A stretch of DNA of 64,000 nt from Setoptus koraiensis (taxonomy: Eukaryota > Animalia > Arthropoda): NCBI GenBank assembly GCA_048013815.1, contig CM106586.1:1054001-1118000 (forward strand). Direction: 5' to 3'. The notes beneath the pieces are model-generated. The model worked only from the letters and a program-made list of their open reading frames with translations. It had not been told where the DNA came from and searched no databases. Below, piece by piece: positions 5,875 to 61,196 of this stretch. Position 1 is the stretch's first letter. The number at the start of each line of letters is the position of its first letter. A program made the translations under genes and the position numbers.

Positions 5875-8800
5875 CTAGCTGATTCGTTGTGGTCCTCGCT
5901 GCTGATAGACATGGTCATCTACGTGGTCGTCAAAATTCACTCGATCATTTGTATCTACAGTTAAATCAGTTTTAATTAGACTCTGTGGCGATGTTGAGGA
6001 GTAATTGAACAATTTGTTTGAATTGACATCTTTAACTAATTGACCAATTGACTGATTATTACCCGATAGCTGTGACTGGCGACTGTTCTGCTGTTCTCGT
6101 AACTTATGCTCATTTTCATCTGTCGATGTCTTCATTGAATCACTTGTTGCTTTTTCCATTTGTGCTACGTTGTGCATCTTAAGAGGACTATTTGCCGTTG
6201 TTGCTAGTGGCTTGCTGGTGCGGGATTGTTGCTTGGCAACTAGTTTGTTATCGTCAGCTGTAGCCTCTAATGTGTTGTTTTTATTGGAGAGAGAAACGGC
6301 GCCGTATTTTCTACCATCATTTCCGGTGCCATCGGAAATCGAAGTTACTGTGTGAAGATGTTGCTGTGTTTCTTTCTGAGATCGTGAATCTTGAGTTCCG
6401 TTGGGTTTTTTCACCTTTGAGGGGTGAGGCTTGCGAGACCACTTGCGTCGATGATGCAGTTTCGTTTCCAGGTCACTCGGACTTATTTCAGCCTTGTGAG
6501 CCGATGAGGCGAGCTGAGAGACCCACTGCCTGTTCGCGTCTGGATGGGTTCTACACCAGTGATCATAAGGCTTCCGACGGCGATCCTTCCTCTTACAGGG
6601 TTTATGATTCTTGGTGCGATCGCGATCCTTGATTAATGCAACAGAATCGTGCCGATGGGTGCCCTCGTCAGACAATGTGTCCGACTCATCAGTTGACATA
6701 ACGGGATCAGTTTTACCTGACTTTTTTATCTGTCTAGTCTTTTGGTATATCAACTTTTTCTTATTGTGCCCGGCGTCATCATCATCACCGTCCCCGCCGC
6801 CTATGCCATCAAATGAACCAATAGGTGTGTCCATAGTTTCACTGTCAACAGGGTCTATCTCGACAGGTCTACTTCGAGCGTGTGTCATTTGTCTTCTACG
6901 TTGACTCGATCCTTTTGCGTCCGGTTCAAATCCAAAGAATTTAAATTGGTTACTATTTGGTGACTCCTCTGTCTCAATGAGACGCTCGCTAGTTTTTGCG
7001 CTCAATTTTTTGTTTATAGGTTTTGGTCTGGCACGCTTCACTTCATGTCCACCATCGCTCTTATCCTCGGGCTCATCCTCAGATTCTCCTTCTACGTCTT
7101 CCGGTTCGCCTGATGACTGCTCACCAGTCCCGTCCGACGATCTGTCATCCTCATACCTATCACGTCGGGACGAATCTTGGCCCCTACGGGCTCTGCTTCT
7201 GTTGCTGCGCTTGTTTTTTCTGCCTGGCCGCCTCCTGTTCTTTCGCATGCTATCCGTTGGTGCTTTTGGTGCCTTTTCATTTTCGCCATAGTTGCCGTCA
7301 TTGTTCATATCGTCATTTTGGATGGTCAATTTGAGACCGTCTTGTTTCATATGTGACGGCGTTGTGCTAATGAGTCCTTTATTGGCCGACGAAGAAGCCG
7401 ATCTCTTGCTAGAGGAAGAGGTAGCGTCTTGCCAGTTTGCGTCATTGTCATGAGTGGTAGCGGTTGCTACTGGCTTGCTGTCGACGGCCAGCTCTCTTCT
7501 AGCCTCGTCGCCCTTCTCCATGGGTTCATCTAGGAAGCCGTCATTGAAATACTGATCAAGATCCTGGCTGAGCTTATTCAATCTAGCTCCCACTTTGTCA
7601 CTAATGGGATATTCGCCTGCCAATGGTGTATCTGAGCTGCCACTAACAGTTGTTCTGCTGTCTGCCGTATCTTTATTTGTATTGTCGCCATCTAGAGACT
7701 GCCCCTTTTCGCTAGCTTTTTCACCGGAATTAGATTGTTCTTTTGTATTGTCCGATCGACCATTTTGACCATCCTTACTCAAAGCGTTCTCAATGAGCGA
7801 TTTCACTTTTATTGGTAGCCTCTTTCTTGTGTCAGCCGTTTCCGAGCGCGATTTATCCAATTTCTGCCTCATTAGGCTCTTGTCTCTTTGTCTAGCGATC
7901 TTACTATACTGATCATCACTATTATCACTGTTATCACTATTGTTAGTGCCTGTCGTCTGCTGCGAATCCGTTCCTGCCGAGTCGCTATTATCGGCCTGCT
8001 TCTCCATATTAATCATTTGTTTAATTTTGTTCTCATTATTGGACACTCTATTCCTGGTGTTTCTATTGTTGTTATTATTACCATTATTGTCACGCTTATC
8101 TACTGCTTTCTTATTATTTATCAATGTCGAGGCCATAGCATGACGAGCGTGATTTTTGTTTCTCTTTCTCTTGGATAATTTATCCTTTTCTTTTCGACGC
8201 TGTTGTTTGTCATATTCGTCCACGTCTGTCAGATCATCGTCATCAGTATCAGCCAGATCCTCTTCACCTTCGTCAATTGCTTCGCTTGATTTGTTTCCGT
8301 TGTTACCTGCTGCCGTCACCTGTTTTTCGGCCACTTTTGCCGCTGTCTTAGCTGCTATAAGATCAATAAGATCGCCCGCTACGTCATTTGACACAGTTTG
8401 CGACTTCTGATTTTTATCTCTTGTCATGGGTGAGTTATTGTTGTTGTTGTTGTTATTTTGAGGCTGCTTACTGTTGCCATGGTCGAGTTTTTGTTTTAAT
8501 TTATTTAACAGTTCCTCCAGATTCGCTTCATTCACTTTGTTTGATGTGTCGCTAGCTTGTTTGTTTGATGAGTCAGCGTTTTCTTTTCCTCTATCAGATT
8601 TATCATCCCATTTTCTATTATTTCTAATTGACTTTGTCTGTCTGTCGTCATTCATTTTCTCATCGCCGTCGCCCTGCTGCTCTGGATAGATATCATTGTC
8701 ATTGTTTGACAGTGACGACGAGCCTCTGAAGTTATTTTTGTTATTGTGATAATCTTGTTGTTGTGGGTCAAATTTATTATCACCTTGTTGCTTGTCTGAC

Positions 8801-9996
8801 AAATCCGAAGATGAAGTTGCCTGGGGATACTGTTTCCTATTGCTATTATACATCTGCTGCTGGTGTTGCTGTCGTTGTTGTTGTTGTTGGCGATTCTGGC
8901 GTTGCTGGTTCTGATGTTGGTGCAGGTCAACAATGTCGTCATTGATGAGATTGTTATCATCTACGGTCTCTATGGTCAATGGGGGATTTGTTAGACTGCC
9001 TCGATTCACATATGAAGCCATAGGTGGCGACTCAGAGCCATTAAACGGTTCCATTGCAGCCGATTGAAAGGGGTGCTGATGATGTAATGATTCAGGATCG
9101 TTATTGTTGTTGGCTGTTGTTTGTATACTATAGTGATTATATTGACCACGACCATCGCGAGTTGCCCCTTGATGATTATTGTTGCCGTGATTGCTTGCTA
9201 AGGGTCTCCGTTGAATTGACCTATATACAGGAACATGTGGGTGATCAAATAAATGAGATTGATGTTGCTGATGATGATGCTGATGGTGAAGTGGCTTACG
9301 CATCGGATAATGGCTAGACGGTGAAATCAATGCCGGCAGACCTAACGGATGCGTTATGACAGCTGGTGCAATTGGATCTGACGATAACGAGGGATATATG
9401 TGTATTGGATCAAACCAATGCGGTCTGTATATTTGATTGGCAGTAAGTAATTTGTTGTTCGACGATGATGATTGTTTCTCATCTCTTGTTCCTCCATCAG
9501 ATCTCTTATCTCTTGATGTGGTGGTTTCAGTTTTTCCAGAGTTGCTGTCAGTTTTAGTCGTGCCATTATTATTATTATTGGTCGTGTCACCTTTAGTTGT
9601 TGCCGAGCTAGTAGTAGGTATGGATTTGATAGTAAGTGAATTATTATCACTGGCTTGATTGCTTGTTGCCACTAACTGCTCACTATTGGCTGTCTTGGTC
9701 TTCAAATGATAATTGGATCTATCTGTGTTCTGTTGTTGTTGTTGCTCGTTATCTATAGGATCGCGCTGGTTTGATGTGTGGGGTTGATGCTGTTGTTTCA
9801 TACAATGGATTCCGACCGTGTTTGTTTGACCATGAAATGAATATAACAGTGTGAATATAGCCAATGACAAAATGATCGTGCGAGATATTTGATTGTGACA
9901 TCGCAACTGTAACTGCGCTTTTGATGATAGTTTTACTCTTGAAACCAACGAGGAATATCTGGAATATTTGCCGACGTGGCGATGGTGACGAGACAT
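5875..9996 (-). CDS. Hypothetical 1373-aa low-complexity, probably secreted or membrane-anchored protein
   Basis: Uninterrupted 4.1-kb ORF starting at ATG. One hydrophobic segment (TIILSLAIFTLLYSF, ~aa 40-54); the rest is N/Q/D/S/K/R-rich with many dibasic sites. No recognised domain. Confidence 0.75.
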   Translation of the reverse strand: MSRHHRHVGKYSRYSSLVSRVKLSSKAQLQLRCHNQISRTIILSLAIFTLLYSFHGQTNTVGIHCMKQQHQPHTSNQRDPIDNEQQQQQNTDRSNYHLKTKTANSEQLVATSNQASDNNSLTIKSIPTTSSATTKGDTTNNNNNGTTKTDSNSGKTETTTSRDKRSDGGTRDEKQSSSSNNKLLTANQIYRPHWFDPIHIYPSLSSDPIAPAVITHPLGLPALISPSSHYPMRKPLHHQHHHQQHQSHLFDHPHVPVYRSIQRRPLASNHGNNNHQGATRDGRGQYNHYSIQTTANNNNDPESLHHQHPFQSAAMEPFNGSESPPMASYVNRGSLTNPPLTIETVDDNNLINDDIVDLHQHQNQQRQNRQQQQQRQQHQQQMYNSNRKQYPQATSSSDLSDKQQGDNKFDPQQQDYHNNKNNFRGSSSLSNNDNDIYPEQQGDGDEKMNDDRQTKSIRNNRKWDDKSDRGKENADSSNKQASDTSNKVNEANLEELLNKLKQKLDHGNSKQPQNNNNNNNNSPMTRDKNQKSQTVSNDVAGDLIDLIAAKTAAKVAEKQVTAAGNNGNKSSEAIDEGEEDLADTDDDDLTDVDEYDKQQRRKEKDKLSKRKRNKNHARHAMASTLINNKKAVDKRDNNGNNNNNRNTRNRVSNNENKIKQMINMEKQADNSDSAGTDSQQTTGTNNSDNSDNSDDQYSKIARQRDKSLMRQKLDKSRSETADTRKRLPIKVKSLIENALSKDGQNGRSDNTKEQSNSGEKASEKGQSLDGDNTNKDTADSRTTVSGSSDTPLAGEYPISDKVGARLNKLSQDLDQYFNDGFLDEPMEKGDEARRELAVDSKPVATATTHDNDANWQDATSSSSKRSASSSANKGLISTTPSHMKQDGLKLTIQNDDMNNDGNYGENEKAPKAPTDSMRKNRRRPGRKNKRSNRSRARRGQDSSRRDRYEDDRSSDGTGEQSSGEPEDVEGESEDEPEDKSDGGHEVKRARPKPINKKLSAKTSERLIETEESPNSNQFKFFGFEPDAKGSSQRRRQMTHARSRPVEIDPVDSETMDTPIGSFDGIGGGDGDDDDAGHNKKKLIYQKTRQIKKSGKTDPVMSTDESDTLSDEGTHRHDSVALIKDRDRTKNHKPCKRKDRRRKPYDHWCRTHPDANRQWVSQLASSAHKAEISPSDLETKLHHRRKWSRKPHPSKVKKPNGTQDSRSQKETQQHLHTVTSISDGTGNDGRKYGAVSLSNKNNTLEATADDNKLVAKQQSRTSKPLATTANSPLKMHNVAQMEKATSDSMKTSTDENEHKLREQQNSRQSQLSGNNQSIGQLVKDVNSNKLFNYSSTSPQSLIKTDLTVDTNDRVNFDDHVDDHVYQQRGPQRIS

Positions 9997-10610
9997 TTTT
10001 TATTTATCATCTCCATTCACTGACCCTAGATATAAACTGACTTGCTGATGTGAAGCAATCTCATATCGGCAGTTGTCGACTATTACAAATACAAATTACT
10101 ATTACAATGACAAATAATAATTTTTATTATTATTATTGTTGCATGACCGACCTAATACGTGCTAATCTAATCATGAAATTGTTTCATAAATGTATCTAAT
10201 TATTGGTTGATTAGTTGTGATGGTGGCACTGATCAGCAATTGATTGATGATAATGCCAAGGCTGTTCTATGACAAGTGATAGCCGGCAGTATGTGTAAAG
10301 TGTTAGGTACTCTCTACTGTTCGAAACATAAACCAGGTCGATACCATTTTCAAGTTTGACAACAGCAAGCTACTAGATTGTCTTGACTGGACAGCGACAA
10401 CTGTCTGGCTAACTTTAGTGTGAACGATAGACAGACAGATCGACACAAACTAATTGTGTTACACAACAAGCAATACATAGCAAACAACTTGGCAGCTATC
10501 TCAACAACAGCCCATTTAACAATCAAGTCCAACATTGAATAGATTGTGCAATGTATCAGCAACATGTTGTGATGCTCCAGATAATGAAGATAGTTCTAGG
10601 TCTTATCGAC

Positions 10611-10614
<4 letters not shown>

Positions 10615-10690
<76 letters not shown>
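10615..10690. repeat. (AG)38 microsatellite
   Basis: Directly visible pure dinucleotide run. Confidence 0.97.
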
Positions 10691-10694
<4 letters not shown>

Positions 10695-11559
10695 ACAGGG
10701 ATAAAAGAACGAGAAACGAGACCATTTGAACTTGCTACAACAATATTGAACATATCCAAAACTAACCAAACAGCATTCGAACACAATCAGTCTGTAGTTA
10801 TTCGTCATCTGCAAGTAGATTATGCCTTTGTAGAAGTGCTTTTCAAAATTGACAGAGATTGCATTCATCGAGGTAGTTACAATTTCGAACAGAGATTCAC
10901 AGAGAGATTTGACTGTGACCAATGAATTGACATTATCCATCCCATAAAGAGACGAGGGATTCTTCCTTGTTTTTATCTTGCTCTTATATAACTTTCTACT
11001 GATTATTAGGCCTTAATGGAAGGTTCACACCCTTTTAGTGACACAGACAAACACACAGGTGAAGTTTAATCTAGATACACCAGTGACAACCAGTACGACG
11101 TTAGTCTTTACGAAGTTTTCATTGACAGAAAGAGGAGAATTAGATCGTTAACACATTGCCTGATTATGTGGTGAAAGGGCTTATGGAACACTAATAAATA
11201 AAAACAGACACAGCTTGCATACAATCTCTTTGTTTTTTTATTTGTAATCAATTTTACCAATATTGTTGTTGTTGATGATGTTTTTGATGCATTGGTTGTT
11301 TCAGTGATTTAAAATTATAATTATTATCATCGTGAATAGTCCCGTCCTCTCGCCCCTTAACTTTTCGTGATTTGACATTGTTGCACTGTTGTTGGTGTGG
11401 TATTTGTTGGAAATAGTTGATAATGCGACTAATACAATGCGATAATTTCATATGTAATATGTATGACCCATCCATGGTTGAATTATTGACATGATGATGA
11501 TGATAATTTCTTGATAAATAGTATCCTTTGTTTGTTCCGCTTTCCTCAAATTATCTCAA

Positions 11560-11690
<131 letters not shown>

Positions 11691-12242: not shown

Positions 12243-12974
12243 TTAATGGCACAAAATGAGGCCAGCAAAGCCTGAGTAGTTGCAATTGTTTAAGTTGTTA
12301 TTGCTGCTGCTATCTCGAGTTTCGGTGTCCATGAATCCAGCCTCATCGACGCGGTTGTTGTCAACCGGAAAAACATTTTGGGAACTCGCTGGCGCTGATG
12401 ATCTTTTGTTACTGTCACCAATTTGTTGTCTCATGGTCCTGTAGGCATTCTCTAGACGTTCCAAGTCAGCTAGAGCGATTTCCATCGGCGCCATGGGTTC
12501 CAGAACGGCACTGCCACGAAATTGACGATTCACACTCATCAAATTCACCGGTTTGCCAGTGACACCTAAACATCAGTGGTCATTAGAGTTAACACAAACT
12601 ATCAGAGACTGTAAGAGAGTATCGAATTATGATTGGTTTGAATTTTGAATTAAACTCACTCGTTTTGGAAGCCTCATCATGATAGGGCTCCAAGGGGAAG
12701 TCATTGCTTGATCTTCTGCCGTAGCGTCCATTCGGAATGAACTTTTGAACTACAGATAGGAATCCGATATCAGACAAAACAAATCAATTGCAAAATAATT
12801 AGCGCAACATTCATTTAGTTGTCACAGCATGGATGGTAAGTCAAAAAGTGCCCAGTTTACTCTCGCTCGTCCTTTACCAACTGATTATTATAAGGTTTTT
12901 TTAAGAAAAATTTTCATTGGCTATACCTAAAGCAACATAAGATACAAAAGTGGTGCTTCGAGCCTCGAAGTTTG

Positions 12975-13021
<47 letters not shown>

Positions 13022-14227
13022 CGTAATTATGTGCAGTTCGTGTTATGGTTATCAACAATAACTATGATGCTCATTAGAGCCCCCCCCCCCCCAAATGATA
13101 TCAAGTGATTGTGAATATTTTAGTGATTCTGTCCATCCTGTGATGCTCTCGTGTGTGATCGCATAGTATAAGTCTCATAATCTCTGCTCTATGCTATCAT
13201 CTCTGGGTGCTACATATATTATGCGATAATTAATAGTTCATTAGTTGCCGCCATTAGGCGTTGGCGGTGTTTGTGTTTGATCAGTGTGACCATTTATGGT
13301 TTGGTGACATAAATGGTCTGGTGTTAGTGCGATATAACTAATTAATAGAAACGACATGTATATGTGTGATGCTAAACAAAGGATATTTTTAAAATATATT
13401 CATGTGTGCTTGTGTGCATATGCATGTGCTTGAATATGGGCCAAAAAATCAATTATACCTGATGTTGAATCCTTGTCCTCGTTGCCGGGCAATAGCAGAA
13501 CCATTGAGTCTGAATCCAGATAGATCTCTCTCAGAAGATGCGACGCATCTAAGCCCTTGCCATTCTTATCTACACCATTACGCTTTGTATTGGTGATGGT
13601 GGCAGCAGTAGCAGTTGTCCTCATAGGTTCTCTTTCACTGTTTGTTCGCTTATTTTGATTATTACTGTTATAGTTTATCATTGTTGCCTCCAGGCAAATA
13701 ATTCCATTGTTGAGTTGACACTCTAACAATTTATGGTGCTCTGCTGGTCGTCGTTGTTGCTCTAGTTTAATTTGATTTGTCAATTCATCGAGAGCCAACG
13801 TCATTAATGGCGCTTGCCAAAGATGCCGCTGCTGCTTGTTGAACACTATTGTTGATGATGAAATAATCTTGTCAAAGATGAAATTAGCAACTTAGCAACT
13901 TTTATTATATAACACTAATACAACTACATAAACAACAGACTCAAAGATCAACATTCAAATGATTATCACACACCGACATCCAGGCAAACACAAAGCCACA
14001 CACACACACATACACACACTGACAATATTCTTTGGTTGACATTGTGAGTTCATCCATACAAATGAATGTTGCTTCAGTTAGCTGGCTAATTAACTAATTA
14101 GTTTAGTAAACTACTTACCGCTAGAGCCAGGATCACATTCAATGTAGGCGACCATTACGCTAGCCAATAGAATCAATAGAAATACTGCACAATCGTTTGA
14201 TAAATCTCTCTTAGTTGTTTTAAACAT
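12243..14227 (-). CDS. RYa: RYamide/luqin-type neuropeptide precursor, 3 exons (14227-14119, 12749-12660, 12565-12243), 173 aa
   Basis: GT-AG junctions close in frame (109+90+323=522 nt). The product is a signal peptide (MFKTTKRDLSNDCAVFLLILLASVMVAYIEC), then DPGSSVQKFIPNGRY-GRR (amidation Gly plus dibasic site), then a C-terminal CNYSGFAGLILC. The last matches the two-Cys CxYTGxxxLxxC motif of RYamide/luqin precursors. Confidence 0.85.
12977..13014. repeat. (GT)19 microsatellite in RYamide intron 1
   Basis: Directly visible. Confidence 0.95.
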
Positions 14228-14907
14228 TCTTATCTGCTGATTTCGCGGTATTGTCTTGGTCTGATTCGCTTTTGACTGGTAACTACTCCTCGTCGGTGCT
14301 GCACATTTACGCGATTTGCAAATCAAACCACCTCGTGTTGAGTTTGCAATGTTAATTGTTGTTGGTGTTCTTCCACTTATAGGCGACATTTTGCTGTTGA
14401 TACTCTCTGATCTATCTGATAGAATGAAATCATGCATAGGTAAGTCTACTATTATACGCATGCAAATAACAAGTGAACGCTATAGACTGCTGAATGAACA
14501 GACACTTGAGAACCTCCGGCTAGACTTTATTGAACTTGTCAAAAACATCAAAAAACCTATGCACTAGCGCACCTGCGCATAACGAACATACATGGAAGAC
14601 TAAAACTATTGGGTTGTTAAACTTCAACTAGATAGGTGAGTAACCGTGGCGGTTACATGAATACCTATACCTTCTTCTTCTTGCTACTTCTACCCTTCTC
14701 AAATTAAAGTTAGTAGTGATCTAATTGGATTGAGTTTGGACATATGGAACACAACAACCCACCTACAATTTATTGTAACTTGCACTTCTAGCAATAATAA
14801 TATTCAATTGATGCTGGTACCGTTATGCCTCTGATCATATGTTACCTAATCTAATTAATTTTCTGATATAACATGCGGGTAATCAGATTCGAATAAAATG
14901 AGAGTGG

Positions 14908-15178
14908 CTACGCTCGTCTCTGAGTGAATTCGGGTGAAGAAAAAGTGACATTGTTTGTCGGAAATGCGGATTGAGATGCCACCGAGCCGAAACTGAGTGT
15001 TTGAAAGGATGCTCCACCAAACGTCTGCTTAGGGATAGCTACTCCTGGTCCAGTTGGCAAGATAGAGTGAAAAGTGGATGATCCAAAACTGGGCTGAAAG
15101 GCCAGTGGAGGCGAATGAAGTTGCTGTTGGAGTCTCTGTTGTTGTTGTTGTTGTTGTTGCTGTTGCTGTTGCTGTTGC

Positions 15179-15275
<97 letters not shown>

Positions 15276-18183
15276 GCAGCCTCTGTTGTTGTTGTTGTTG
15301 ATGATGCTGTTGTTGATTTTGCTGCGGTTGCAAAGGCTGTTGCAGCTGTTGTAACTGGTGCTGCTGTTGCAGTTGGGGTTGCTGTTGGGGTTGCAGTTGG
15401 GGTTGCAGTTGGGGTTGCAGTTGGGGCTGCTGTTGGATTTGCTGTTGGGTTTGCTGTTGGGTTTGCTGTTGAGGCTGCTGTTGGGGCTGCTGTTGGGGTT
15501 GCTGCTGGGGCTGCTGTTGATGCTGCAGTTGTTGTTGTAATTGATGTTGTTGTTGCTGCTGTTGTTGCTGCTGCTGTTGCTGTTGTTGCAGCTGTTGTTG
15601 TTGTTGTTGCTGTTGTTGCAGCCTCTGTTGTTGTTCCTGTTGTTCTTGCTGCTGTTTCTGCTGTTGTTGCAGCCTCTGTTGTTCTTGCTGTTGTTTCTGC
15701 TGTTGTTGTAGTTGTTGCTGTAGCCTCTGTTGTTGTTCCTGTTGTTGTTGTAGCCTCTGTTGTTGCTCCTTTTGTTGTTTCTGCTGTTGCTGTAGTTGTT
15801 GCTGTTGTTGTTGTTGCAGCCTCTGTTGTTGCTGTTGCTGCTGTTGTTGTAGTTGTTGCTGTAGCCTCTGTTGTTGCTCCAGTTGTTGCTGTTGCTGTAG
15901 CCGCTGTTGTTGTTCCTGTTCTAGCTGTTGAAGCCTCTGTTGTTGTTGCTGAAGTTGCTGTTGCATGTTATGATGTTGTTGCTTGAAGCTCTTTTGAGAG
16001 ACCTGATGCTTGCGAGTAGGTGGAAAAGACCCACGATTTTCTAGATATTCGCGCAGAGCTGCTGTTGTCTTATGATCATAGTTGCATGAACTGACGGCAA
16101 CCATGCTCTGGTATTCGTTGGGGGTCTGCTCTGATTTTACATTTGCATTGGATAAGATTTGTTTTAAAACAGTAATGACTTTCCCATTCTTTCCCAACAT
16201 CCTGTAAATGAGTTGCAAGGTATTCAGCTCCCTAGTTTGAGGTTTAACTCTAATTCTTCGGTTGAAGACCTCCCATTCTTGATCAACTTTTAACTCTATG
16301 TTCTTAAGACTTTCTTGCAGTTGATCACAGTTTACTCGGATTTTTTCCGCTTTTCTCATAGTTATGGGATCAAGCGGTCTCTTTTTGATTATATAATTAT
16401 GACGTGGATCCTCCTCTTGCTTCAGTCGTTGACGGATAGTCTCTATGTAATAGAAATTTTCAATCAAGCCTTCGTTCAAAGTTTTGATATCTGTCTCAGT
16501 AGCCTCCAACACCTGACAGTGGGTTTTGTAAATCTCCAGAACCTCTTCGGACTTCGAGCGCACGGCATTTATGACGGCATCAAAATCGTAGTCAATTTTA
16601 TTCTTTACACACAGTGTTTTCAAATCTTGAATATCTTTATCCAGCGATCTCACTAAATCGTTTATATAACTTGCTGACGCCATCTGAGGAGAATTTGGTG
16701 TATGGGACTGGAGGGTAGCTGGTGGGGACTGGAGGGTTGCTGATGGGGACTGGAGGGTTGCTGATGGGGACTGGAGGGTTGCTGATGGGGACTGGAGGGT
16801 TGCTGATGGGAACTGGAGGGTAGCTGATGGGGACTGAAAGTTAGCTGGCGAAGATTGTAGAGTGGCCGGAGAGCATGGTAGTGCAACTGGTGAATAAGGT
16901 AATGTGTTGATAAGAGGAGGTATGTTAACAGGACAGCTTTGTTTGGGGAGCAATTCCGGTAGTGTGAGGATATTATCTGCGTGAACGGCGTAGTATGGAC
17001 ACAAAACTCCGTCACTTGTGAGTGTAAATACTATGGGAGAGTTGGGTCCTCCGATAGTCTGAATATCAGATACTTGAAATGTCTGTTGAACTCCATAGGC
17101 TAGAGAAATTCCTCGCATATATGTCTCACTACTATCGGAATCTCTAAAAGGTAACTCAATTCGTCCGCTCTCATCGACTGTCAACGCTCGCCAATCAGAT
17201 GGATCGGCGGCACTAGGGTTATTATCGTCACGACCCACGAATGCTGCCTCTGATCCGCTAGTTGAACCACATACAACGAGACTGCTTAGATTGAGTAGAT
17301 AAACATTATAACCAGAGTCGATAGATGCCTCCGGAAAGAGACTTTTCCACGAGCAATAAGACTTAGTGGGCTTCGGGGTAAATATGGAATATGTGGTGTC
17401 TCTATCGTTGGGATTATTAGGTTTAGAATGGACAGACATTAATATGGTTTTGGATATCCATCTGAGTTTAATAACGCTATACTGCTTAAAGTCCGTGAAC
17501 AAGGTGCTTTTATCCACTTGTTTGAATTTAAATTCCTCCTTAGTCATTGTCGGCTCCAATCTAAGTACTTTTCCATCTTGCGTGCCCAAGGCTAGTTGTT
17601 TTCCCTTGGGCGACCAACAACATGTTGTAACACCATATTGTGCACATTCGTGAACGAAACTGGCCTGAGTTAGGTTATCACTAATAGCCACAATTAACAG
17701 TTTACCATCACTAGTACATAGAGCAACTATGGAATCGAAACAAGTCGGATGCCATGCAACGTCAACAATTGTGGCGTTGTTGGACGCTGGTAGATTCAGT
17801 GAGGCAATGGGTGTTTGATTGTCAATTCTAGTAATATCAAATAGTTGGATAACTGGAGCGTTGTTTTGTCCTTGTTGGCCCGAACATAGTAACAAATCAC
17901 CGTAGCCATAATTGCTAACACTTATATAGGATGGCTTGTAGGCCAGCTGTAAGGACAGTCTACAGTTTGTTAATAAGACAGTTTCGTTAATAACGTTTTT
18001 TGACCAGACATAATTAAACAATGCATCCAAATCAAAACATTTGATTGTGTCTTTACATCCAACAAATATTAGTCTGTATTTGCTAGATATCGCTAATAAT
18101 TCGCCGGTCGACCCATCTACAAAATCGTGAATTTTGTATTTTTTGAGCTCCCAAAATTTCAGTTTAACAGATTCGGCGTCCAT
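14908..18183 (-). CDS. Nup214: Nucleoporin Nup214/CAN (beta-propeller + coiled coil + Q-rich tail), intronless, 1091 aa
   Basis: N-terminal FWELKKYKIHD..LLAISSKYRLIFVG, CCWSPKGKQLALG and LTSDGVLCPYY fit the Nup214 propeller; EDPRH..IKKRPLDP fits the coiled-coil segment. Three FG motifs at the extreme C-terminus. Confidence 0.85.
15136..15985 (-). repeat. Coding CAA/CAG-rich repeat domain (poly-Q) in Nup214
   Basis: 47 consecutive Gln codons at 15136-15276, preceded in the protein by QQPQ/QLQP units and multiple QQRLQQ units. Confidence 0.95.
16704..16870 (-). repeat. 21-bp coding tandem repeat (~8 copies) encoding (SATLQSP)n in Nup214
   Basis: GGGACTGGAGGGTTGCTGATG repeated head-to-tail on the plus strand. 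Confidence 0.9.
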
Positions 18184-23627: not shown

Positions 23628-23741
23628 ATGGCCAGTAACCAAGCTAATCAGCAGCAACAACTACAACAACAGCAACAGCAGACCGAACAATTATTACAAC
23701 AACAGCAACAACAGACAGAACAACAACAACAGCAGCAACAG

Positions 23742-23773
<32 letters not shown>

Positions 23774-26505
23774 GACCGAACAACAACAACAACAACAGCA
23801 GCAACAACAGCAGCAGACACAACAACCGTCTTACTCGATACCAGGGATACTACATTATTTGCAATATGAGTGGCACAAATTTGAGGCCGAAAGGCAACAG
23901 TGGGAAGTTGAAAAGGCAGAACTATCGGCCAGGATAGCGCTATTACAGGGAGATAGAAAAGCGCACGAGAACCTTAAATTTGATCTAGTTAGGCGCATCA
24001 AAATGCTTGAGTACTGCCTCAGGATGGAGAGGGCCAAATACCACAAGCTCAAATACGGTGTAGATCCGCCTGTGTTGGGTGCCGATGATGTTAGCAGCAC
24101 CAAACCAAAAGAAATTTCCACCGTAGACAAGCCTGAACCTAGTGCTAACAATGACCCCAGTACACAACAATTGGAGCCTAAGATTATTAGTGAATTAAGC
24201 AATTACAATTCTAATAATGATTCCGCGCAATACAAGCAAGGCCGTGAACTGCTGAGACAATATCTACAAGAAATAGGATACACAGATACAATCATAGATT
24301 TGCGATCTAATCGTGTGAGATCTTTACTAGGTATTGGAACGCCACAAGCTAATCTGCTTGGTTGTTCTCCCAATAATAACGTACTAGACAACGTGTTTCA
24401 CCAAAATCATGATGAACATTACGAAAAGCAGCCTGTTACCGCTATACTAACACATCACAATAAACAACAGTTAAAACAACAAAATAATTTAGATTCTACT
24501 GGACAAAATGCTAGCACCAACAGTGATCCATTAGGCTGGGATGAACTTCAAACTCAGATGAATCAACAACTCTCGAAAAAACCTCAATCTGCACCACGAA
24601 CTAACAGTACAAATGATACTACCACGGCGAATAATCAATTTGATTTAGAATCCAGCGCCATCAATCAATTGGAGCAACAATCAAATGGTAGAAAATGGAA
24701 TAATTCATTAACATCGGAAAATGAAGCCTCAGTATTAGCCAATTTTGAATTTCTATATGATCAAAATCGAACATCGAAAGATACAGAAGAGGACGAAGAA
24801 GAAGAAGTTTCTGAAGATATTGTAGATTCGGTTGATCGAGCATCTTCTGTAGCTGCCTCTGGTTATTCATATCACTTTGAGAAGGAAAATGATGCTTCTG
24901 TTATTTATGGTAATAAATTAGGTGGCTTCATGAATGCTAACAATACCACGATGGTAGATTCTTCTAAGAATAGTACCGATAATAAAACCAATGGTAAACC
25001 TACGAATGCAACCGATCAATTGGCCAACATGACACAGTTGAACTCAGTACCAAGAAAAAAGCAACCCGCAAAAAATGCTTTTGTTCCCCTCAAGAATGAC
25101 CCTGTAGATATAGGCGAACTTGCTGCTCTCATGACTTTACCAAATGATTCCGATTCTATGGATTCGGCCATAGGATCTAAATCAGCTGAGCATAGAAAGG
25201 CCTGGATCGCTAAATACCAACTCAAATCCCATTTTGATTGTGTGCGAGCTCTCAGATTCCACGATACAGAATCTTTATTGGTAACAGCATCGGAAGATGA
25301 AACTATTAAACTATGGAATCTAGCCAAAACACAACCAGTCACCAACAAGAATAAACAGACAGGTGTACCTGCGTCAATCAACACCCCGAACCCCTCAAAC
25401 TCTACCCTAGATCTTGAGCCAATCTACACATTTAGAGGTCACTCATCTCGAATATTATGCCTAGCTCTACACAAGAATATTATTTTTTCTGGTGCACAAA
25501 ATGGTGAAATCATAGTATGGCAAATACCTTCGACGGACATCTCTTCAATAGACCCATATGATAGATATGATTCCCGCCAGACTCTTGGTCAGCTAGAAGG
25601 CCATGGAGATGCTGTCTGGTCTCTAGAGATCATCAATGTTCCCACCAAGGCATCCCCTCTACTATGTTCGGCCAGCTCCGACAAAACCATCAAGATTTGG
25701 GATACATCGGTGACAAAAGAAGATGAAGAGCCACTCAATCAGACAATATCGACTAAGACACCCCTTGCAGTAATCGATGTGGGAGAATCTTCTCCAACAT
25801 GTCTAGCAACCATACCAGAGCTAAACAATTTTTTTTCAAGCAGTGATCTTGCAGTATCCTTCAGTGACGGAAAGATCAAATTTTATGATATTGCAGCTTG
25901 TCTAACAAAAACTGAACCCAATACTCAACCCTTTTTAACACTAGAACATGGAAGCCCCTCTAGGATAAATTCACTTGTAATTCATCCCAACTTGCCTTGC
26001 ATGGTTAGTGCTCACAATGATCGAGATATAAAATTCTGGGATTTAACTACTCGTAAGTATTTGGGCAGATATTCAGAAAACTTGTAATTACTCTCTGGAG
26101 ATGTCACAGTATTTAATGGAGTATCCATTTCTTTTTCATAACAGGAAAATGTAATCATACCATGGTTGCTCATCTTGATGAAGTTACAAGTTTAGCATGT
26201 GATCCAAATGGAGTTTATTTATTAAGTGCTGGTAAGTTACCCCTGCATTTATAGTAGCCTTCTTTAATTTCTCGTTGAACTCCTGGTTATAACATAGAAT
26301 TTTGTTATTTTATATTGCCAACTACAACTTAGGCCATGATTGTAGCGTTAGATTGTGGAATTTCAATGATAGAACTTGCGTTCAAGAGTTAACATCTCAT
26401 AGGAAAAAATTTGATGAAGCTATCTTTGCAGTCACATTTCATTCTACCTTACCACATTTCGCCACTGCTGGTGCAGATGGCTTAGCAAAAGTTTTTGTAT
26501 CATAG
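23628..26505 (+). CDS. Strn: Striatin (STRIPAK scaffold, PP2A B''' subunit); 3 exons (23628-26052, 26145-26231, 26333-26505), 894 aa
   Basis: YSIPGILHYLQYEW (caveolin-binding), coiled coil ARIALLQGDRKAHENLKFDLVRRIKMLEYCL, QGRELLRQYLQEIGYTDTI (CaM-binding) and a C-terminal WD40 ending AGADGLAKVFV. Exon sum 2685 nt is in frame. Confidence 0.95.
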
Positions 26506-45734: not shown

Positions 45735-47366
45735 TTATTTATTCATGCTTATTCTGCCCTGTAAGTAGGTTAATTCTTGGCGCAATTGTTGATTGGCACG
45801 CTCCAATTCTTTGACATTGCGCTCGTAGATTTTTAAATCATTGTGCAGTTTTCTATTGTTTAATTCCAAGTCATTTCTCAATGCCAAACGTTTTGTGCGA
45901 CAATTTTGTGCGTAGCCACGATTCTTGAGCGTTCGTCGTTTCTGTTTTAATTTGAGTACCTCTTCGCGCGAACAACCCGATAGGCGTTTGTTTAGCTCGC
46001 GCACAGACAAACTAATTAACAAATCGTCACTGATTGATGACTTTGACAACTTTTGGTTGCAAGATGCCGACGATTGAGCCGATGATGTCTGATGGTGTGA
46101 GACACAAGCAGCGACCGATGCCGACACTTTGGTTGCAATGGCCGACGACAACGACGATGCTGCTGATGATGCCGAATTCAAGGAAGACGCTGCCGATGAC
46201 GATGAGGCGGTGGAGGAGGATGACGACGATGATGAAGACGAAGATGACGACGATGATGATGACGACCTCATACTGTGATGATGATGATTTAACGCATGAT
46301 GATGATGAAGATGATGAGCATTGTTGTGATTCAATTGATTTGACACAACAGCTTGTAAAGAATTCAAAAGGTGATGTGGTGCTGGTGGCGGCGGCGGCGG
46401 CGGCTGTTGCATACCGATCGGCGTTGTTGTTGGTGTTGTGGTTGGTGTTGGCGCAATTGCTGGCGCTGGTGCTGTTGTTGTTGTGGTTGTTGTCGCTGTT
46501 GCTGTTGGATGATGATGATGAAAAGTGTGATGAGGATGATGACCATACTGATGATGATGATTGATTGGCAAATAATTTGGAGAACTGCTGCTAGTAATAT
46601 TGTGAGGTGATGCGCTGGTTGACAAATGTAAATGATTACCGTTAGTTATCAAGTGAGTGTTTCCATTTGGTTGTTGTTGTTGTTGTTGTTGTTGCTGCTG
46701 CTCTGTTGACACAGCAGACGAATTGTTGTTGGTGTTGTAATCAGCGCTTAACAACAATTGATGACTGAGGTTCTGGTTGAGATGGTGCTGGTGTTGCTGG
46801 TCTAAATTGTGATTCAGGTTAAGTTGGTCAAAGTATGACGCTGATTGTTGCTGCAAATTGTTGTTGTGTTCGTCCAGCTGATGATCACAACAATCATTGT
46901 CGTCATTTAACAGATGCTGATTGTGTTGTTGTTGTTGTTGTTGTTGTTGCATAATAAGACCACGATAACCGCACAATTGCTGATGATGAGGGTGCTGGTG
47001 CTGAAGGTGATGATGATGCTGGAGATACTGGTGTTGCTGGTGTTGTTGATGATAATATTGGCTCATGGTGTTGCTAGTGTTGTTGTCATCAATGTTATGA
47101 TGGTGCTGCTGTGACTGATTGTCCAGTTGATGATGCATGCCACTCTGACATTGTTGTTGTTGTTGTTGCTGTTGTTGGTGGTGGTGAATATGATGAAATG
47201 TGGATGCTTGTTGATGATTGTTGTTGTTCATCGACAATGACTCATTGTTGTCGCTATCCAATTGCTGCTGATCATTGTAGCTGTTGTTGTTACTGTTGCT
47301 GTTGTTGTTGTTGCTGTTGTTGTTTTGGCCATACGAAGCCAACGCCAATGTCACCTTTGTCGACAT
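45735..47366 (-). CDS. Large Maf bZIP transcription factor (traffic jam-like), intronless, ~543 aa
   Basis: [44 protein letters not shown] is the Maf extended homology region plus basic region, followed by a leucine zipper. Long Q/N/H/S-rich N-terminus; first in-frame ATG at 47366. Confidence 0.92.
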
Positions 47367-50637: not shown

Positions 50638-53600
50638 TTATTCGGCCGTTGGCGGCGGCGGTGGGCACGTGCAAAAGAGATTAGTATCACCATAAGTGTC
50701 GTCCACTCTGCCAACTGTAGGCCAGATCTTAGTTGTTGCAGTTGCAATAGTGGTATGATTATGCGCTGGAAAAGCAGCTTGTTCTCTGGTGTATTTACGA
50801 TGCCAATTACTCGAGCAAACAACCTTTTGTGTATGAGGCGCCCTCTTTATGGGATTGTCCTCCTTGTCTAATTTACCCGATTCTATATCTCTTATTTCTT
50901 GTCTAATCACTAGCAACGCGTCAACATATCTATCTAATTGTTGTTTGTCTTCAGATTCTGTTGGCTCCAGCATAAGTGTATTAGTTATAGGAAATGATAC
51001 TGTTGGTGCATGTAAGCCAAAGTCTTGCAATCGCTTTGCAATGTCCACCGCTTCTATATTGGCGCTTTTCTTAAACGGCCTAATGTCCAATATGAACTCG
51101 TGCGCCACATTTCCTCTCATTCCTCTGAACAATATCTCATAGTCATTCTCCAGACGCTTCTTCATATAGTTAGCGTTCAATATGGCCATTTCGCTAGATT
51201 CTCGCAACTTGTGCGACATCAATCTAATATAGGCCCAGCTAATTGGCAAAATGGCCGGCGAGCCAAACATACTAGCCGACACCGTGCCAAAGCTCTGGTC
51301 CATTTTGTTGTTTGGGTCATAGTGATCGCCCGACACAAGCGGATGATTTGGCAAGAAGGGAATCAGGTGCTTCTTGACGCCAATGGGTCCGGCGCCGGGT
51401 CCTCCGCCTCCGTGCGGAATACAAAAGGTCTTGTGCAAATTCAAATGGGACACATCACTACCAAAGTCCCCTGGTCGACTCAGACCAACTTGAGCGTTCA
51501 TATTTGCCCCGTCCATATACACTTGTCCGCCTGCCTCGTGCACCAATTTGCACATGCTGACGATGCCTTCTTCGAACACTCCAAACGTCGACGGATAGGT
51601 GATCATGAGACAGGCTATCCTGTTTCCGTGCTTCTCTATGCAGGCCTTGAGATGGTCCATATCTATGTTGCCGTCTGGCATCACCTTGATGGTCTCGATG
51701 TCGAAGCCGGCCATTTGCGCCGATGCCGGATTGGTTCCATGGGCCGACACAGGGATGAGGCATACCTACGGACCGGGCATTTGGAGCAAGATTGTGTCGG
51801 AATACCATGGCATTTGCGTAATAATAAAGATAAAAGACATTTTAATAAAATATGATAATAATGTGTTTGCAATATTGTTGACAACTATTTTGTTTTTTCG
51901 CCGGCTGGCTGGTGTTGCGAGCCCGCGCGATTACGCCTCAGCGACAGCGGCACAGTCAAATGCGTGCCGCTGCGCGATCTAATTGGCGCATGTGCAGCAA
52001 TAATGATAAACACACGCAATAGGTTACAACTTACATTTCTTTGTTGCTGCCCAATTGACTCTAGATAGGCCTTGATCACTCTGAGGCCCGCATATTCACC
52101 CTGGGCCCCCGAATTGGGCTGAAACGATATCCTGTCGTAGCCTGTGATCTCGCAGAGATACTGGTCGAGATCTTGGAACAATTTGGCGTAACCGGAACAC
52201 TGTTGAACTGGCTGAAATGGGTGACATTTTGCAAAGTGATCCCAAGAGGAGGGTATCATTTGGCTGGTAGAGTTCAGTTTCATGGTGCACGATCCCTGAT
52301 AATGGGCACCGGAATGATATATGCGTGTTTGTTGATTGTCATCACGGCAGCATTGTTTATAGCAGCAACGTGGAATAAATTTCAGCAACAATCAGGCAAA
52401 GAGTTGACGCAAATGAGAATAATTTAGAAGAAGGTCTGATAAGATCTGCGATTGGAGCACCACGAGACATGTAGACGCAACGACAACTACTTACAAGTGG
52501 TATCATCGAGTGAACTAGTGATATGTCCTTGTTCTCCAAATGCTTCATGTATCTGACAAGCTGAGCTTCGCTGCGATAACTATTGAACGTAACATGATCC
52601 AGATAACTTGTTTGCCGAACCAGTGATCGCAAGCTGGAGTTAACGGCCAATTTTGTTGTCTTGTCGTCGTTTAGCCAATTATACATACATTTGTCACTAT
52701 TGTCAGCATTATTACTATCGTTATCATGCGCTTGCTTGCAAGCGAACAATCCAGCCAATGTTGGCAGGTCTGACAATTTGGTAGTCTCGTCTAATGATAT
52801 ACCAATATGAATTTGATCAGTGTAGTAACGCAAATTTATCTTTGCGTCGCGAGCTCTTGATTCAATCAACTCTCTAGCCTGTTCATCGCGACACTTGATT
52901 GTGATTGTATCAAAGTAGCTTGTCTCATTCACCACACTAGCCAGGGGATCATTTTGCTGTTGCATTTGTAGTTCGTTGATCATGGCAATCAAGGCACCAG
53001 TTTTTCTGTGAATATCCATGGCGATCTCTTTCAAGCCTTTAGGTCCATGATAAACGGCATACATGGCCGACATGTTGGCCAATAATGCCTGGGCTGTGCA
53101 AATGTTTGATGTGGCCTTGTCCCGTCTGATGTGTTGTTCGCGAGTCTGTAGCGCAAACCTATAGGCAGGATCGCCGTTTGAATCGCGAGTCATACCTACC
53201 AATCGGCCCGGCATTAGTCGTGTCAATTTTTGTTGACAAGCTAGAAAGCTCGCGTGAGGTCCGCCATAGTTGAGCGGAACACCAAATCTTTGACTATTGC
53301 CAATAACTATGTCGGCAGGTTGCTGAAAATCGCCAGGAGCCTTAAACAATGTGCAAGCCAATAGATCGGTTGCCGTAACAACCAAACACTGAACCTGTGA
53401 GCATTGTTGCGTCAGTCTATCTATGTCATACAGATAACCGTTTGTGTTTGGATATTGTATAATGATGCCGCTGAATTGACTAAGATCGTAATCATTCAAG
53501 GACCTTATTTCGCCATCGCCATTGTCACATGACGATGCTATTGCTGTTGACGACGATGACGAGGTTTGTTTCAATTCGTCAAACATCTCTATGTCGACTT

Positions 53601-54859
53601 GCAATGCGTCTGCTCTAGTTTTTATAACCGCTATTGTCTGTGGATGACATCTGACAGACACTAGAAATTTGTTTCTTTTTGATTTATGGAACCTGTACGA
53701 CAAATATCGTTGAAAACGTGTGTTAGCCTTGTCAACTGATGATACACATGATAATAATTGGTGCCCTTGTTTGTTGGATTTTAGAGCATTATAGCACTAA
53801 TGAATTAGTAGTCACGAACCTGAGACACATTTGCATGGCCTCGGCGGCCGCCGTAGCCTCATCTAGTAAACTAGCGTTGGCTATGTCCATTCCGGTGAGA
53901 TCTTTTATCATGGTCTGATAATTCATCAGACTCTCTAGGCGACCTTGGGCAATTTCGGCCTGGTATGCTGTGTAGGCCGTCGTCCAACCTGACATCCACA
54001 AATTTTCCACGAATCAAGATAGGTTATGTCGTTGTTTTCGAAACACTCTAGCGTTTAGAGTTCAAACGAACACAATTCAATTTTATATGATGTATAGCTT
54101 ACCGGGATTCTCAAACATGTTGCGTAATATCACAGCTGGAGTGACACAATCATGATAGCCCATTCCTAAATAGGATTTCCAATTGACACAATCATTTAAT
54201 TGGGCTATTTTTTGCAATTCTATTAATAGTTCTTGTTCATTTACTTGTTTTGGCAAATTTAGGTTTCTAGTGAAACGAATCTCATTTGGCACAGTGTCCG
54301 TTATCAATTCATCCATGGTGCTATAGTTCAATGTTGCCAACATACTAACTTTGTCCTCTTCTCTAGGTCCGATGTGTCGTCTAGCAAAATCATGACTTCT
54401 ATTCAATTGTTCATGACTTTCACTGTCTAAATATCGTTGTTTGTCTGCTGCAATACTTGCATTAAATAAGCTCTCCTCTTCGTGTTGACAAACTTTTTCT
54501 TTTGTTTGATTTATCGCAAATGCCATGTTTCTTTTCTGGCCTCTAGTCGCTGCATTTTTATTATTAGTTGCTGTTGTGGTAGTAATAATCTTTTGGCTAT
54601 AGTTGTTTATTGTATTTTTGCCACTATCACGGCCATTATTACTGTCTGACTTGGAGCGAGTGGTAGACCTCAAGGTTGAGGCTCGTTTCTCAAACAAATT
54701 GCCAAGCTCCGTACTATTATTATAACTATTATTTTTGCTATTGTGCACTATGCTGGACAGTTTTCTCGGCGCCAAATCACCATAGGTAACACGACAACCT
54801 GTATACAATGTCGCTTGATTGCGCAATAGTACGCACGGCAGACATTTCAAGTTTTGCAT
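50638..54859 (-). CDS. GLDC: Glycine dehydrogenase (decarboxylating), glycine cleavage system P protein; 5 exons (54859-54103, 53988-53820, 53692-52495, 52295-52035, 51765-50638), 1170 aa
   Basis: RRHIGP, YLGMGYH, ENP|[48 protein letters not shown]|[40 protein letters not shown] (PLP Lys), [17 protein letters not shown]. Exon sum 3513 nt is in frame. Confidence 0.96.
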
Positions 54860-56678: not shown

Positions 56679-57697
56679 TTAGTGCTGCTGATGGTAGATA
56701 TTAGTTTGTTCTTGACATTTTGAATTCAGCGAAGATACAACGGCAGTCTTGATACGCTTCCTATCTATGTAAGCTGTTGAGCTAACGTTGCTTATATCCA
56801 AAGATTCGACAATAAAACTGGCACAGGTCTCACTGGTACCACCGCTGCCGCCACTGGCGCTGTTCATAACACCATTTTGAGAGCATCTTCTACCTGTTGG
56901 TACTGTCACCTGACTCTGTTTCTGATGTTGCTGTAGGGCCTGTTGATGTTTGTTGTTGCTGTCATTTAAAGGGTTGGCACCAAAATGATTACTCTGGCAG
57001 GTGGCGTACACCAAACCATTGTCCTCAACGCTAGATATAGAGGATAGCGATTGTGACTTGGATGTCTTGCTAGAAGAAGGACCTGGCTTAGAATTATCAG
57101 CGCTAGAGCCAGCTTGTTGCCTAGATTGCCGATAATGAACATATTGCCTATATCTCCTGTAGTAGGCCTGGATAATTGTGGCCGCTTGCATCTCCTTCTC
57201 GCGATAGGACGCATGAGGTGCATGATGAAGATGCCCAAGATTAAGGAGTCGGTGATGCAAATGTCTATGATGAGGCTGAGTTTCTTTGTGATTGCTCACT
57301 GATATATCAGATGCTTGCCTCTTTCTACCCTTGTAAATGCGGTAAGCTTTTTGGATCACTTTGGCAGCCTCATAAAGTTCTTGTTGCTCATAATCGGACA
57401 GTGTCAAACAAGAGAAACTCTCCTCAGCCTTGGCGGATGCCTGGAAATATTCGCAAAAGTCTGCAGATGTCGGTGTACCTGACGATTGGTGACCGCATGA
57501 GCAAGGCGAATCAATTGGAGCAACGCTCATTGGCGAATGCAAGCTCGAAGATGGGCTAGATGACAATATTGAACCTAAGCCACTACTACTGGTTTCAGTT
57601 TGCGAATCATGACTTATATTCTGAGCTCCACCATGTGTGTGAGATAATAGCATTATTTGAGACTTGGCATTGGAACAGCTTGGCATCATGTTTTGCG

Positions 57698-57752
<55 letters not shown>

Positions 57753-60700: not shown

Positions 60701-61196
60701 AACCGTAGATACATTCGATGCCTTGCACTTTAAGTTTCATGTGATCCTCTCTTGTAGTCTTGCCATTCTTTCTTTTTTTCCAACAGTATCCATCCTGTCT
60801 ATAGCGAACTTGCTTTCTACTATACAAAATTATGGCGCCACTTTTTGGTCTGGGAAGTTTACATTTATGTATATGTGAGTATAGAGAAATGGAAAGTTGG
60901 TTATTGATAGTTTAAAGCTAAAGTAAAATATGATGATTTCGGTCACATGGTGATGGTGAAAATCTCAACGAGTTCAAAGCCACGAAATCTCATCGAGTAG
61001 AATCCTACCTTATTTGCACTTCATTTGTTAACCAATCACAGTGTGAATCTATTTTCATCAATATGGAGGCTATTTCCTCATTTGTGTGCCATCTATTTCG
61101 TGAGTTAGCGAAATTGGTGACATCCGGTAATCCCTTTAAGCTAATAGTACCTTCGTGAGTTTCGATTGACTCTATGATGTCATTATCACAATTCAT
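56679..61196 (-). CDS. Camta: Calmodulin-binding transcription activator (CG-1, TIG, IQ motifs); exons 61196-61009 and 60849-56679; further upstream exons possible
   Basis: RNRWHTNEEIASIL..QIR|PKSGAIILYSRKQVRYRQDGYCWKKRKNGKTTREDHMKLKVQG..HRRCYWLLQNPDIVLVHYLN (CG-1), DYVPNW..GGSKVLI..VLRCYAP..VIFEYK (TIG), AAKVIQKAYRIYKGR and AATIIQAYYRRYRQY (IQ). The 5' end is uncertain. Confidence 0.93.

Follow-up and report, generated by a model that had tools for sequence, protein, structure and literature searches.

A glutamine domain between the coiled coil and a short FG tail: an unusual, lineage-specific architecture of Nup214

Introduction

Domains rich in phenylalanine-glycine (FG) motifs are working parts of the nuclear pore, and transport receptors bind FG repeats through the phenylalanine side chain. 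In Nup214, a nucleoporin of the cytoplasmic filaments, two such working relationships are established: the propeller is the docking site of the DEAD-box helicase DDX19/Dbp5, at the last step of mRNA export, and the FG domain tethers CRM1 at the pore. Deletion experiments in yeast and in fly cells have suggested that asymmetric FG domains, the one of Nup214 among them, are dispensable. Here we describe a Nup214 gene found in a 64,000-nucleotide stretch of the Setoptus koraiensis genome (assembly GCA_048013815.1, contig CM106586.1, positions 1,054,001 to 1,118,000 of the forward strand; hereafter the window), whose product carries a long glutamine domain and three FG motifs after its coiled coil.

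One related system is engineered: Drosophila Nup214 without its FG region rescues and stabilises Nup88 and stays at the pore, losing only the tethering of CRM1 at the rim (Sabri et al. 2007, PMC2064463). For the propeller, PMC5998080 describes activation of DDX19 by Nup214 together with Gle1 and Nup42. Natural animal cases of Nup214 FG-domain loss appear to be undescribed: a literature search for natural FG-domain loss in animals returned none, and nucleoporins are not discussed in the Aculops genome paper. The account that we favor, and hold to be probable, is that the window encodes an authentic mite Nup214 whose FG domain has been cut to a remnant in this lineage and lost in a sister clade, the glutamine tract being a tolerated spacer without an FG-like barrier role.

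Results

Identity of the protein

The evidence on the locus comes from the 64-kb window of assembly sequence. The open reading frame (ORF) at 14908..18183 (-) has a predicted product of 1091 amino acids (aa) and a TAG stop at 14908-14910. As far as the post-coiled-coil motif its parts are the following.

14908..18183, (-) strand: Nup214 gene, single exon, 1091 codons plus stop (ORF list, PDB matches, tree placement)
16954..18183, (-) strand: N-terminal NUP159/214 beta-propeller, about residues 1-410 (Pfam PF16755, PDB alignment, invariant block)
16678..16953, (-) strand: low-complexity linker, residues 411-502, with a tandem unit of 21 nucleotides (nt) and no FG
16039..16677, (-) strand: helical coiled-coil region, residues 503-715, homologous to the Nup88/Nup62-binding part of Nup214; predicted helices
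16009..16056, (-) strand: post-coiled-coil motif LREYLENRGSFPPTRK, residues 710-725 (alignments, motif table)

Pfam family PF16755 matches residues 28-363 with an E-value of 3e-16 and a score of 60.1 bits, the cut-off being 29.6. When the first 461 residues were compared with all PDB sequences, the top matches were without exception Nup214 chains – Xenopus 7TDZ and human 3FMO, 2OIT and 7R5J – with E-values from 1.6e-32 to 8.6e-29; Sec13, the family that ranks next, reaches no better than 1e-6. Xenopus Nup214 can be aligned over residues 12-450, and a D-E-x-x-R-I-E-L-P block (residues 337-345) is invariant across the window protein and four relatives. Taken with the fact that the nearest named relatives are the Nup214 proteins of Tetranychus urticae and Oppia nitens, the propeller and PDB sequence matches identify the protein, on sequence grounds, as Nup214; a first, sequence-only reading of the stretch had given it the same name, which the family check by profile upholds.

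Between propeller and coiled coil lies a linker in which Tandem Repeats Finder reports 6.3 copies of the 21-nt unit (SPSATLQ six times, 95% matches) at 16704-16836 (-). The repeat is young; the same linker in relatives holds different repeats (MKLPDLQPT in relative P0004) or FG repeats (14 FG in relative P0019). Homology resumes in the coiled coil. Residues 8-673 of the window protein align with residues 14-723 of Oppia Nup214 (P0023), coiled coil included, other mite Nup214 proteins align likewise, and the profile matches of the second group (see below) reach profile positions 660-710. An AlphaFold2 (AF2) model of the whole protein, built on a five-row alignment and used for helix positions only (mean predicted local distance difference test score, pLDDT, 46), places low-confidence helices at residues 503-527, 534-569, 573-588, 606-643, 655-679 and 704-715. 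By analogy with its family, this region would bind Nup88 and Nup62. The motif that closes it, LREYLENRGSFPPTRK, corresponds to an F-L-x-x-R-x-x-V-P-V-R-R motif common to all proteins compared; the length and FG content of what follows were measured from it.

What follows the coiled coil in relatives

A word-based search yielded four relatives (31-39% identity, 625-777 aa), each from an unannotated read assembly. Together with the window protein these were used to build a five-sequence profile, which was run against 1.84 billion representative proteins; the 150 best matches were listed. The top group consists of 14 cluster representatives (P0001-P0004 and P0010-P0019) of 625-970 aa, which derive from public read assemblies and score 585-1030 bits. 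Below a large gap, at 276 bits or less, comes a second group of proteins of 1045-1608 aa, the named members being those of Tetranychus urticae (XP_015786627.1, 1589 aa) and Oppia nitens (XP_054169165.1, 1387 aa). Leptotrombidium deliense (RWS24807.1) and Sarcoptes scabiei (KAF7487709.1) are lower-ranked; all named mites are acariform. The other tabulated matches are mostly of 1600-2300 aa, and the few that are named come from fish, frog, mosquito, nematode and fungus. The total number of FG motifs in animal matches reaches about 48.

Counted from the F-L-x-x-R-x-x-V-P-V-R-R motif, the three sets differ sharply. Other mites (of the Tetranychus, Oppia, Sarcoptes and Leptotrombidium type) carry 443-858 aa with 10-22 FG, against about 365 aa with 3 FG in the window protein and 1-27 aa with no FG and no polyglutamine (polyQ) in the 14 short forms. 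The long C-terminal FG-repeat domain expected of Nup214 is therefore missing from the window protein, and neither polyQ nor any other extension follows the coiled coil in any of the 14 sister lineages. A downstream FG exon in these relatives was considered and rejected, given that the stop codons of the short forms are real and that no frame with three or more FG was found in the six relative loci scanned (contigs L001-L006). No closer relative turned up in a scan of Joint Genome Institute (JGI) metagenome contigs.

Tree and lineage

A maximum-likelihood tree was built from the propeller and coiled coil of 36 proteins (813 columns) chosen from the 150 best profile matches. The window protein falls inside the mite Nup214 clade; no second Nup214 copy is present in the 64-kb window. 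Two nodes matter here: the window protein and the 14 short forms make up a clade (100/100), and the 14 short forms make up a clade of their own from which the window protein is excluded (100/100). Together these nodes make the window lineage the sister of a clade in which the C-terminal region was lost entirely. Long forms from unannotated assemblies group with the Tetranychus-type and Oppia-type mites.

The contigs of the relatives are very gene-dense and their genes single-exon, which fits the published picture of eriophyoid mites (PMC7738191; bioRxiv 10.64898/2026.08.24.746826). By inference, the group formed by the window protein and its relatives would be that of the eriophyoid mites.

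The glutamine domain

Following the post-coiled-coil motif the window protein enters a glutamine domain, which can be divided into three blocks.

15121..15984, (-) strand: glutamine domain, residues 734-1021 (composition, codon counts, tandem repeats)
15544-15984, (-) strand: block 1, residues 734-880, QQRLQQ, QQEQQ and QQKQQ units
15301-15543, (-) strand: block 2, residues 881-961, QQQP and QLQP units
15121-15300, (-) strand: block 3, residues 962-1021, near-pure glutamine, with a run of 47 glutamines at 15136-15276

Glutamine accounts for 215 of the 288 residues (146 CAA and 69 CAG codons). The sequence-only reading had put the domain at about 290 residues with QQRLQQ and QQPQ/QLQP units and 47 straight glutamines, standing in the place of the FG repeats. 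The counts bear out the description and the comparison bears out the position: the domain occupies the place that 443-858 aa of serine/threonine-rich and FG sequence take up in other mites.

The blocks appear to differ in age. The leading 32 codons of the 47-glutamine run are all CAA, a pure (CAA)32 stretch that has the look of recent slippage. In blocks 1 and 2, on the other hand, CAA is mixed with CAG and L, R, E, K and P residues recur regularly, on which grounds we regard these blocks as old. In Tandem Repeats Finder the whole region comes out as one degenerate array with a period of 6/12/18, and the non-glutamine residues reuse their codons (AGG for 8 of 10 arginines, CCC for 8 of 11 prolines), a pattern that fits growth of the domain by duplication of multi-codon units. 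In other mites a conserved helix, SSxxxSAxxKxKEK, stands right after the motif, exactly where the glutamine domain begins; the alignment is at most suggestive of a possible derivation of block 1 from that helix. AF2 draws helices for residues 733-876 and 960-1020 of its overall poor model (pLDDT 46), and helix predictions of that sort are usual for glutamine-rich sequence.

PolyQ runs, of 8-18 residues, are also found in at least three other genes of the window.

23721-23816, (+) strand: polyQ run in Striatin
46671-47322, (-) strand: polyQ run in bZIP Maf
57699-57752, (-) strand: polyQ run in the large ORF 56679-60827

Like the Nup214 tract these are CAA/CAG runs inside disordered parts of conserved proteins; unlike them the Nup214 tract is far longer (288 aa and a run of 47, versus 8-18 glutamines). 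CAA/CAG-encoded polyQ thus seems to be a habit of the coding sequences of this genome.

The FG tail and the C-terminus

Behind the glutamine domain the frame continues into a short tail.

14911..15120, (-) strand: remnant FG tail, residues 1022-1091 (70 aa; FG positions, LSFGSVASQ motif, terminal FTQRRA)
15082-15087, 15016-15021 and 14986-14991, (-) strand: FG motifs SFGS (residue 1033), TFGG (1055) and SFGS (1065)
14911-14928, (-) strand: terminal FTQRRA, the ORF ending in ...SPEFTQRRA
14769..14774, (-) strand: AATAAA, putative and likely polyadenylation signal, about 135 nt past the Nup214 stop (read in the sequence)

The whole protein contains exactly three FG motifs, every one of them inside the last 70 aa, and the tail has nine phenylalanines (six beyond those in FG). 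Its end is of a recognizable kind. Four named mite species (Tetranychus, Leptotrombidium, Oppia and Sarcoptes) share the C-terminal form F-[ST]-Q-R-R-[QKG], of which the window protein has the QRR. More generally, F-x(1,3)-[WYR]-R-x(0,1) is the C-terminal end of 79 of the 110 Nup214 matches longer than 1200 aa and of none of the 14 short forms; among shuffled C-termini it occurs at a frequency of 2e-4 (0.02%). Animal Nup214 ends are of the type S-F-[ST]-x-[WY]-R (...SSFSSWR in many matches, ...GFGGWRS in mammals). We know of no function for this end motif. A second conserved element lies further upstream: LSFGSVASQ of the tail lines up with xSFGALAS of mites, and in 56 of 109 long matches an xFGx[LVI]A motif lies no more than 120 aa from the C-terminus, mammalian SFGTLASQ among them.

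Judged by these motifs, the end of the ORF is the true C-terminus of Nup214: a conserved end motif stands directly before the stop, which argues that no FG exon is missing. Because a conserved (selected) tail lies behind it, the glutamine domain would be translated and kept in frame. The end motif and the FG motifs together mark the tail as what is left of the ancestral FG domain, and to that extent "FG domain replaced by glutamine" is fair as a description of architecture.

Two other gene models were rejected. The first is a missing downstream FG exon: no FG-rich frame is present from the stop to the downstream RYamide gene, and the conserved end motif is in place. Across the 64-kb window no stop-free frame is FG-rich, the maximum being five FG, in the ORF of the glycine-cleavage P-protein (GcvP). 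The AATAAA 135 nt past the stop and the RYamide exon 447-681 bp downstream agree with this. The second is that the glutamine domain is an intron: there is no GTRAG donor between residue 700 and the stop, and a single GT in the whole domain. On all these points the sequence-only reading – three FG motifs (SFGS, TFGG, SFGS) in the last 70 or so residues, and no room for a large FG exon before a RYamide ORF some 450-700 bp away – was accurate, and the numbers of FG motifs after the coiled coil in orthologs (10-22 in other mites versus 3 here, 0 in the 14 short forms) set its count in context.

By motifs, the tail aligns with the last 57 or so residues of the human protein, past the stretch that was crystallised with CRM1 (5DIS, about residues 1916-2030, from the CRM1-binding region at 1916-2033). 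This positional match is weak and falls in low-complexity sequence. A phmmer search of the tail against PDB sequences gave no match at E-values up to 10, and the 71-aa tail alone found nothing in Pfam.

Gene neighborhood

In the window Nup214 lies between a BAH/ELM2 gene upstream and a RYamide-type neuropeptide gene downstream, the latter at 12243-14227 (-). The signal-peptide exon of the RYamide-type gene has its Met at about 14227 and a donor after ...GSSG, and a further exon encodes ...FIPNGRYGRR; the mechanical ORF around the signal-peptide exon starts at 14461, and these two starts give the distance of 447-681 bp from the Nup214 stop. Several short-form relatives (L002, L003, L008 and L009) have in common a gene order not found in the window: NRF-domain gene, RPL38, Nup214, seven-transmembrane (G-protein-coupled) receptor.

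Beyond the 3' end of the RYamide gene, and sharing its strand, is an ORF of 1373 aa at 5875-9996 (-), rich in N, Q, S, K and D, for which Pfam gave no match at an E-value of 1e-5. Long (GA)n/(CT)n microsatellites at 10600-10700 and 11560-11690 produce spurious SLSLSL and RERERE ORFs in several frames. The glycine-cleavage P-protein (50638-53703, (-) strand) is spread over at least two ORFs (GDC-P at 52357-53703; GcvP2_C at 50638-51750) and must therefore have at least one intron, though most genes here are single-exon.

Discussion

If the favored account is correct, then the protein would have kept the parts that work at either side of the linker. The propeller would dock the mRNA-export helicase DDX19/Dbp5, and the coiled coil would anchor Nup214 to Nup88/Nup62 in the pore, as members of the family do. 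The FG domain (443-858 aa with 10-22 FG in other mites) would have shrunk to a 70-aa remnant with three FG, an xFGxxAS motif and a terminal F-T-Q-R-R-x; the glutamine domain would have grown through duplication of short CAA/CAG-based units and, latest, through slippage of a pure CAA run; and the sister clade (14 sampled lineages) would have shed everything past the coiled coil. That complete loss suggests that these mites came to be able to do without the FG domain of Nup214. Most likely the glutamine tract is a tolerated spacer, disordered or helical, with no FG-like barrier role, and the domain probably a repeat expansion of neutral origin in a dispensable spacer: we read it as filler because polyQ is common in the genome, because the domain is absent from the relatives, and because the sister clade has nothing after the coiled coil. 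It may serve as a spacer or as an extension of the coiled coil. Resemblance to the fly construct lacking the FG region makes it probable that tethering of CRM1 by Nup214 is reduced in the window species and absent in the sister clade.

Several points weigh against this account. The databases contain no relative with more than 40% identity over the length of the protein; the AF2 model, with its mean pLDDT of 46, is poor; the first two blocks, being old, could be functional, for instance as a coiled-coil extension; and the check for a second copy covers the 64-kb window only.

The sequence-only reading had gone further, proposing that the glutamine domain does the work of the FG domain in its stead – as a cohesive, phase-separating filament on the cytoplasmic face of the pore – and that the three-FG tail is a minimal CRM1 dock. 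The proposal has attractions: the domain sits exactly where the FG and serine/threonine-rich region was lost, and the frame stays open through it into a conserved tail; the two older blocks show mixed codons and non-glutamine residues at regular places; AF2 models long helices at residues 733-876 and 960-1020; and the tail retains FG motifs along with two motifs conserved across animal Nup214. We nevertheless consider it unlikely. All 14 sister lineages do without an FG domain and without polyQ after the coiled coil, leaving nothing to replace; polyQ occurs in many unrelated genes of the window; the longest pure-codon run, of 32 CAA, is a sign of recent slippage; the retained tail matches human Nup214 beyond the fragment crystallised with CRM1; and glutamine, as is well established, does not have the phenylalanine side chain that transport receptors bind in FG repeats. 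Substitution of polyQ for the FG filament thus finds no comparative backing. We are similarly doubtful of the related idea that the domain is a selected filament, cohesive or coiled-coil, which takes over the spacer or barrier role of the FG domain and holds the FG/FTQRR module off the pore. Were such a selected filament real, it would amount to a natural FG-to-Q swap in a nuclear-pore protein.

A different possibility is that the gene is an extra, reduced paralog and that the genome has a canonical, FG-rich Nup214 at another place, outside the 64 kb covered here. Among the matches placed in the tree, chosen from the best 150, no long-form Nup214 groups with this clade: the 100/100 clade of the window protein and the 14 short forms holds short forms only, and the long forms group with Tetranychus- and Oppia-type mites. 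Propeller, coiled coil and terminal motif are all kept, as expected of a working copy, and eriophyoid genes as a rule have one exon (PMC7738191; bioRxiv 10.64898/2026.08.24.746826). A hidden second copy is accordingly improbable. Nor is it likely that faulty assembly (expansion, collapse or misjoin within the CAA/CAG repeat) created the tract or altered its length, for although an 860-bp degenerate trinucleotide array with a near-pure run of 141 bp is hard to assemble, the frame is continuous from the conserved coiled coil through the tract to a lineage-typical end motif before the stop, a misjoin or length error would preserve that frame in one of three cases only, and blocks 1 and 2 are too irregular for a simple slippage artefact.

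With a reduced but authentic Nup214 as the preferred reading, the architecture is that of a real Nup214, unusual and lineage-specific, and the loss of the FG domain at the level of a clade is the more interesting result. A group of mites with streamlined genomes gave up the FG domain of Nup214, and the window lineage represents a half-way state in which the last 70 residues are kept. The extreme C-terminus (xFGxLAS plus F-x-x-[WYR]-R, conserved from mites to vertebrates) was apparently the last part of the FG domain to be given up. These proteins give a natural starting point for finding out which purposes the FG domain of Nup214, the tethering of CRM1 and the end motif serve; the glutamine tract, probably a by-product, offers a ready test of whether polyQ on a pore filament is harmless.

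Comparison with known systems

The Nup214 proteins of acariform mites share with the window protein the propeller, linker and coiled coil, the F-L-E-x-R-x-x-V-P-x-R-R motif, xFGxLAS and a terminal F-[ST]-Q-R-R-x, at 25-31% identity over propeller and coiled coil. They differ in what follows the motif: a conserved SSxxxSAxxKxKEK helix right after it, and 443-858 aa with 10-22 FG in all, as opposed to 288 aa of glutamine domain plus 70 aa with 3 FG. The short sister-clade proteins stand closest to the window protein, with 29-42% identity in local BLAST alignments, and, like it, are encoded by single-exon genes with propeller, coiled coil and post-coiled-coil motif; they reach a stop no more than 27 aa past the motif, without glutamine domain, FG tail or terminal motif. 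Some of them carry FG in the linker between propeller and coiled coil instead (P0019, with its 14 FG).

Vertebrate Nup214/CAN (2OIT, 3FMO, 7R5J, 7TDZ) resembles the window protein in its propeller (E-values 1.6e-32 to 8.6e-29), in domain order and in the class of end motif (human-type ...GFGGWRS). It is, however, about 2090 aa long and has dozens of FG motifs, and the CRM1-bound fragment in 5DIS seems to lack a recognisable counterpart in the window protein. Another parallel is Drosophila Nup214 deltaFG (PMC2064463), whose N-terminal part is enough for binding to Nup88 and to the pore. That protein is an engineered deletion studied in S2 cells, has lost CRM1 tethering at the rim and has no glutamine tract; the mite proteins look like its natural counterparts.

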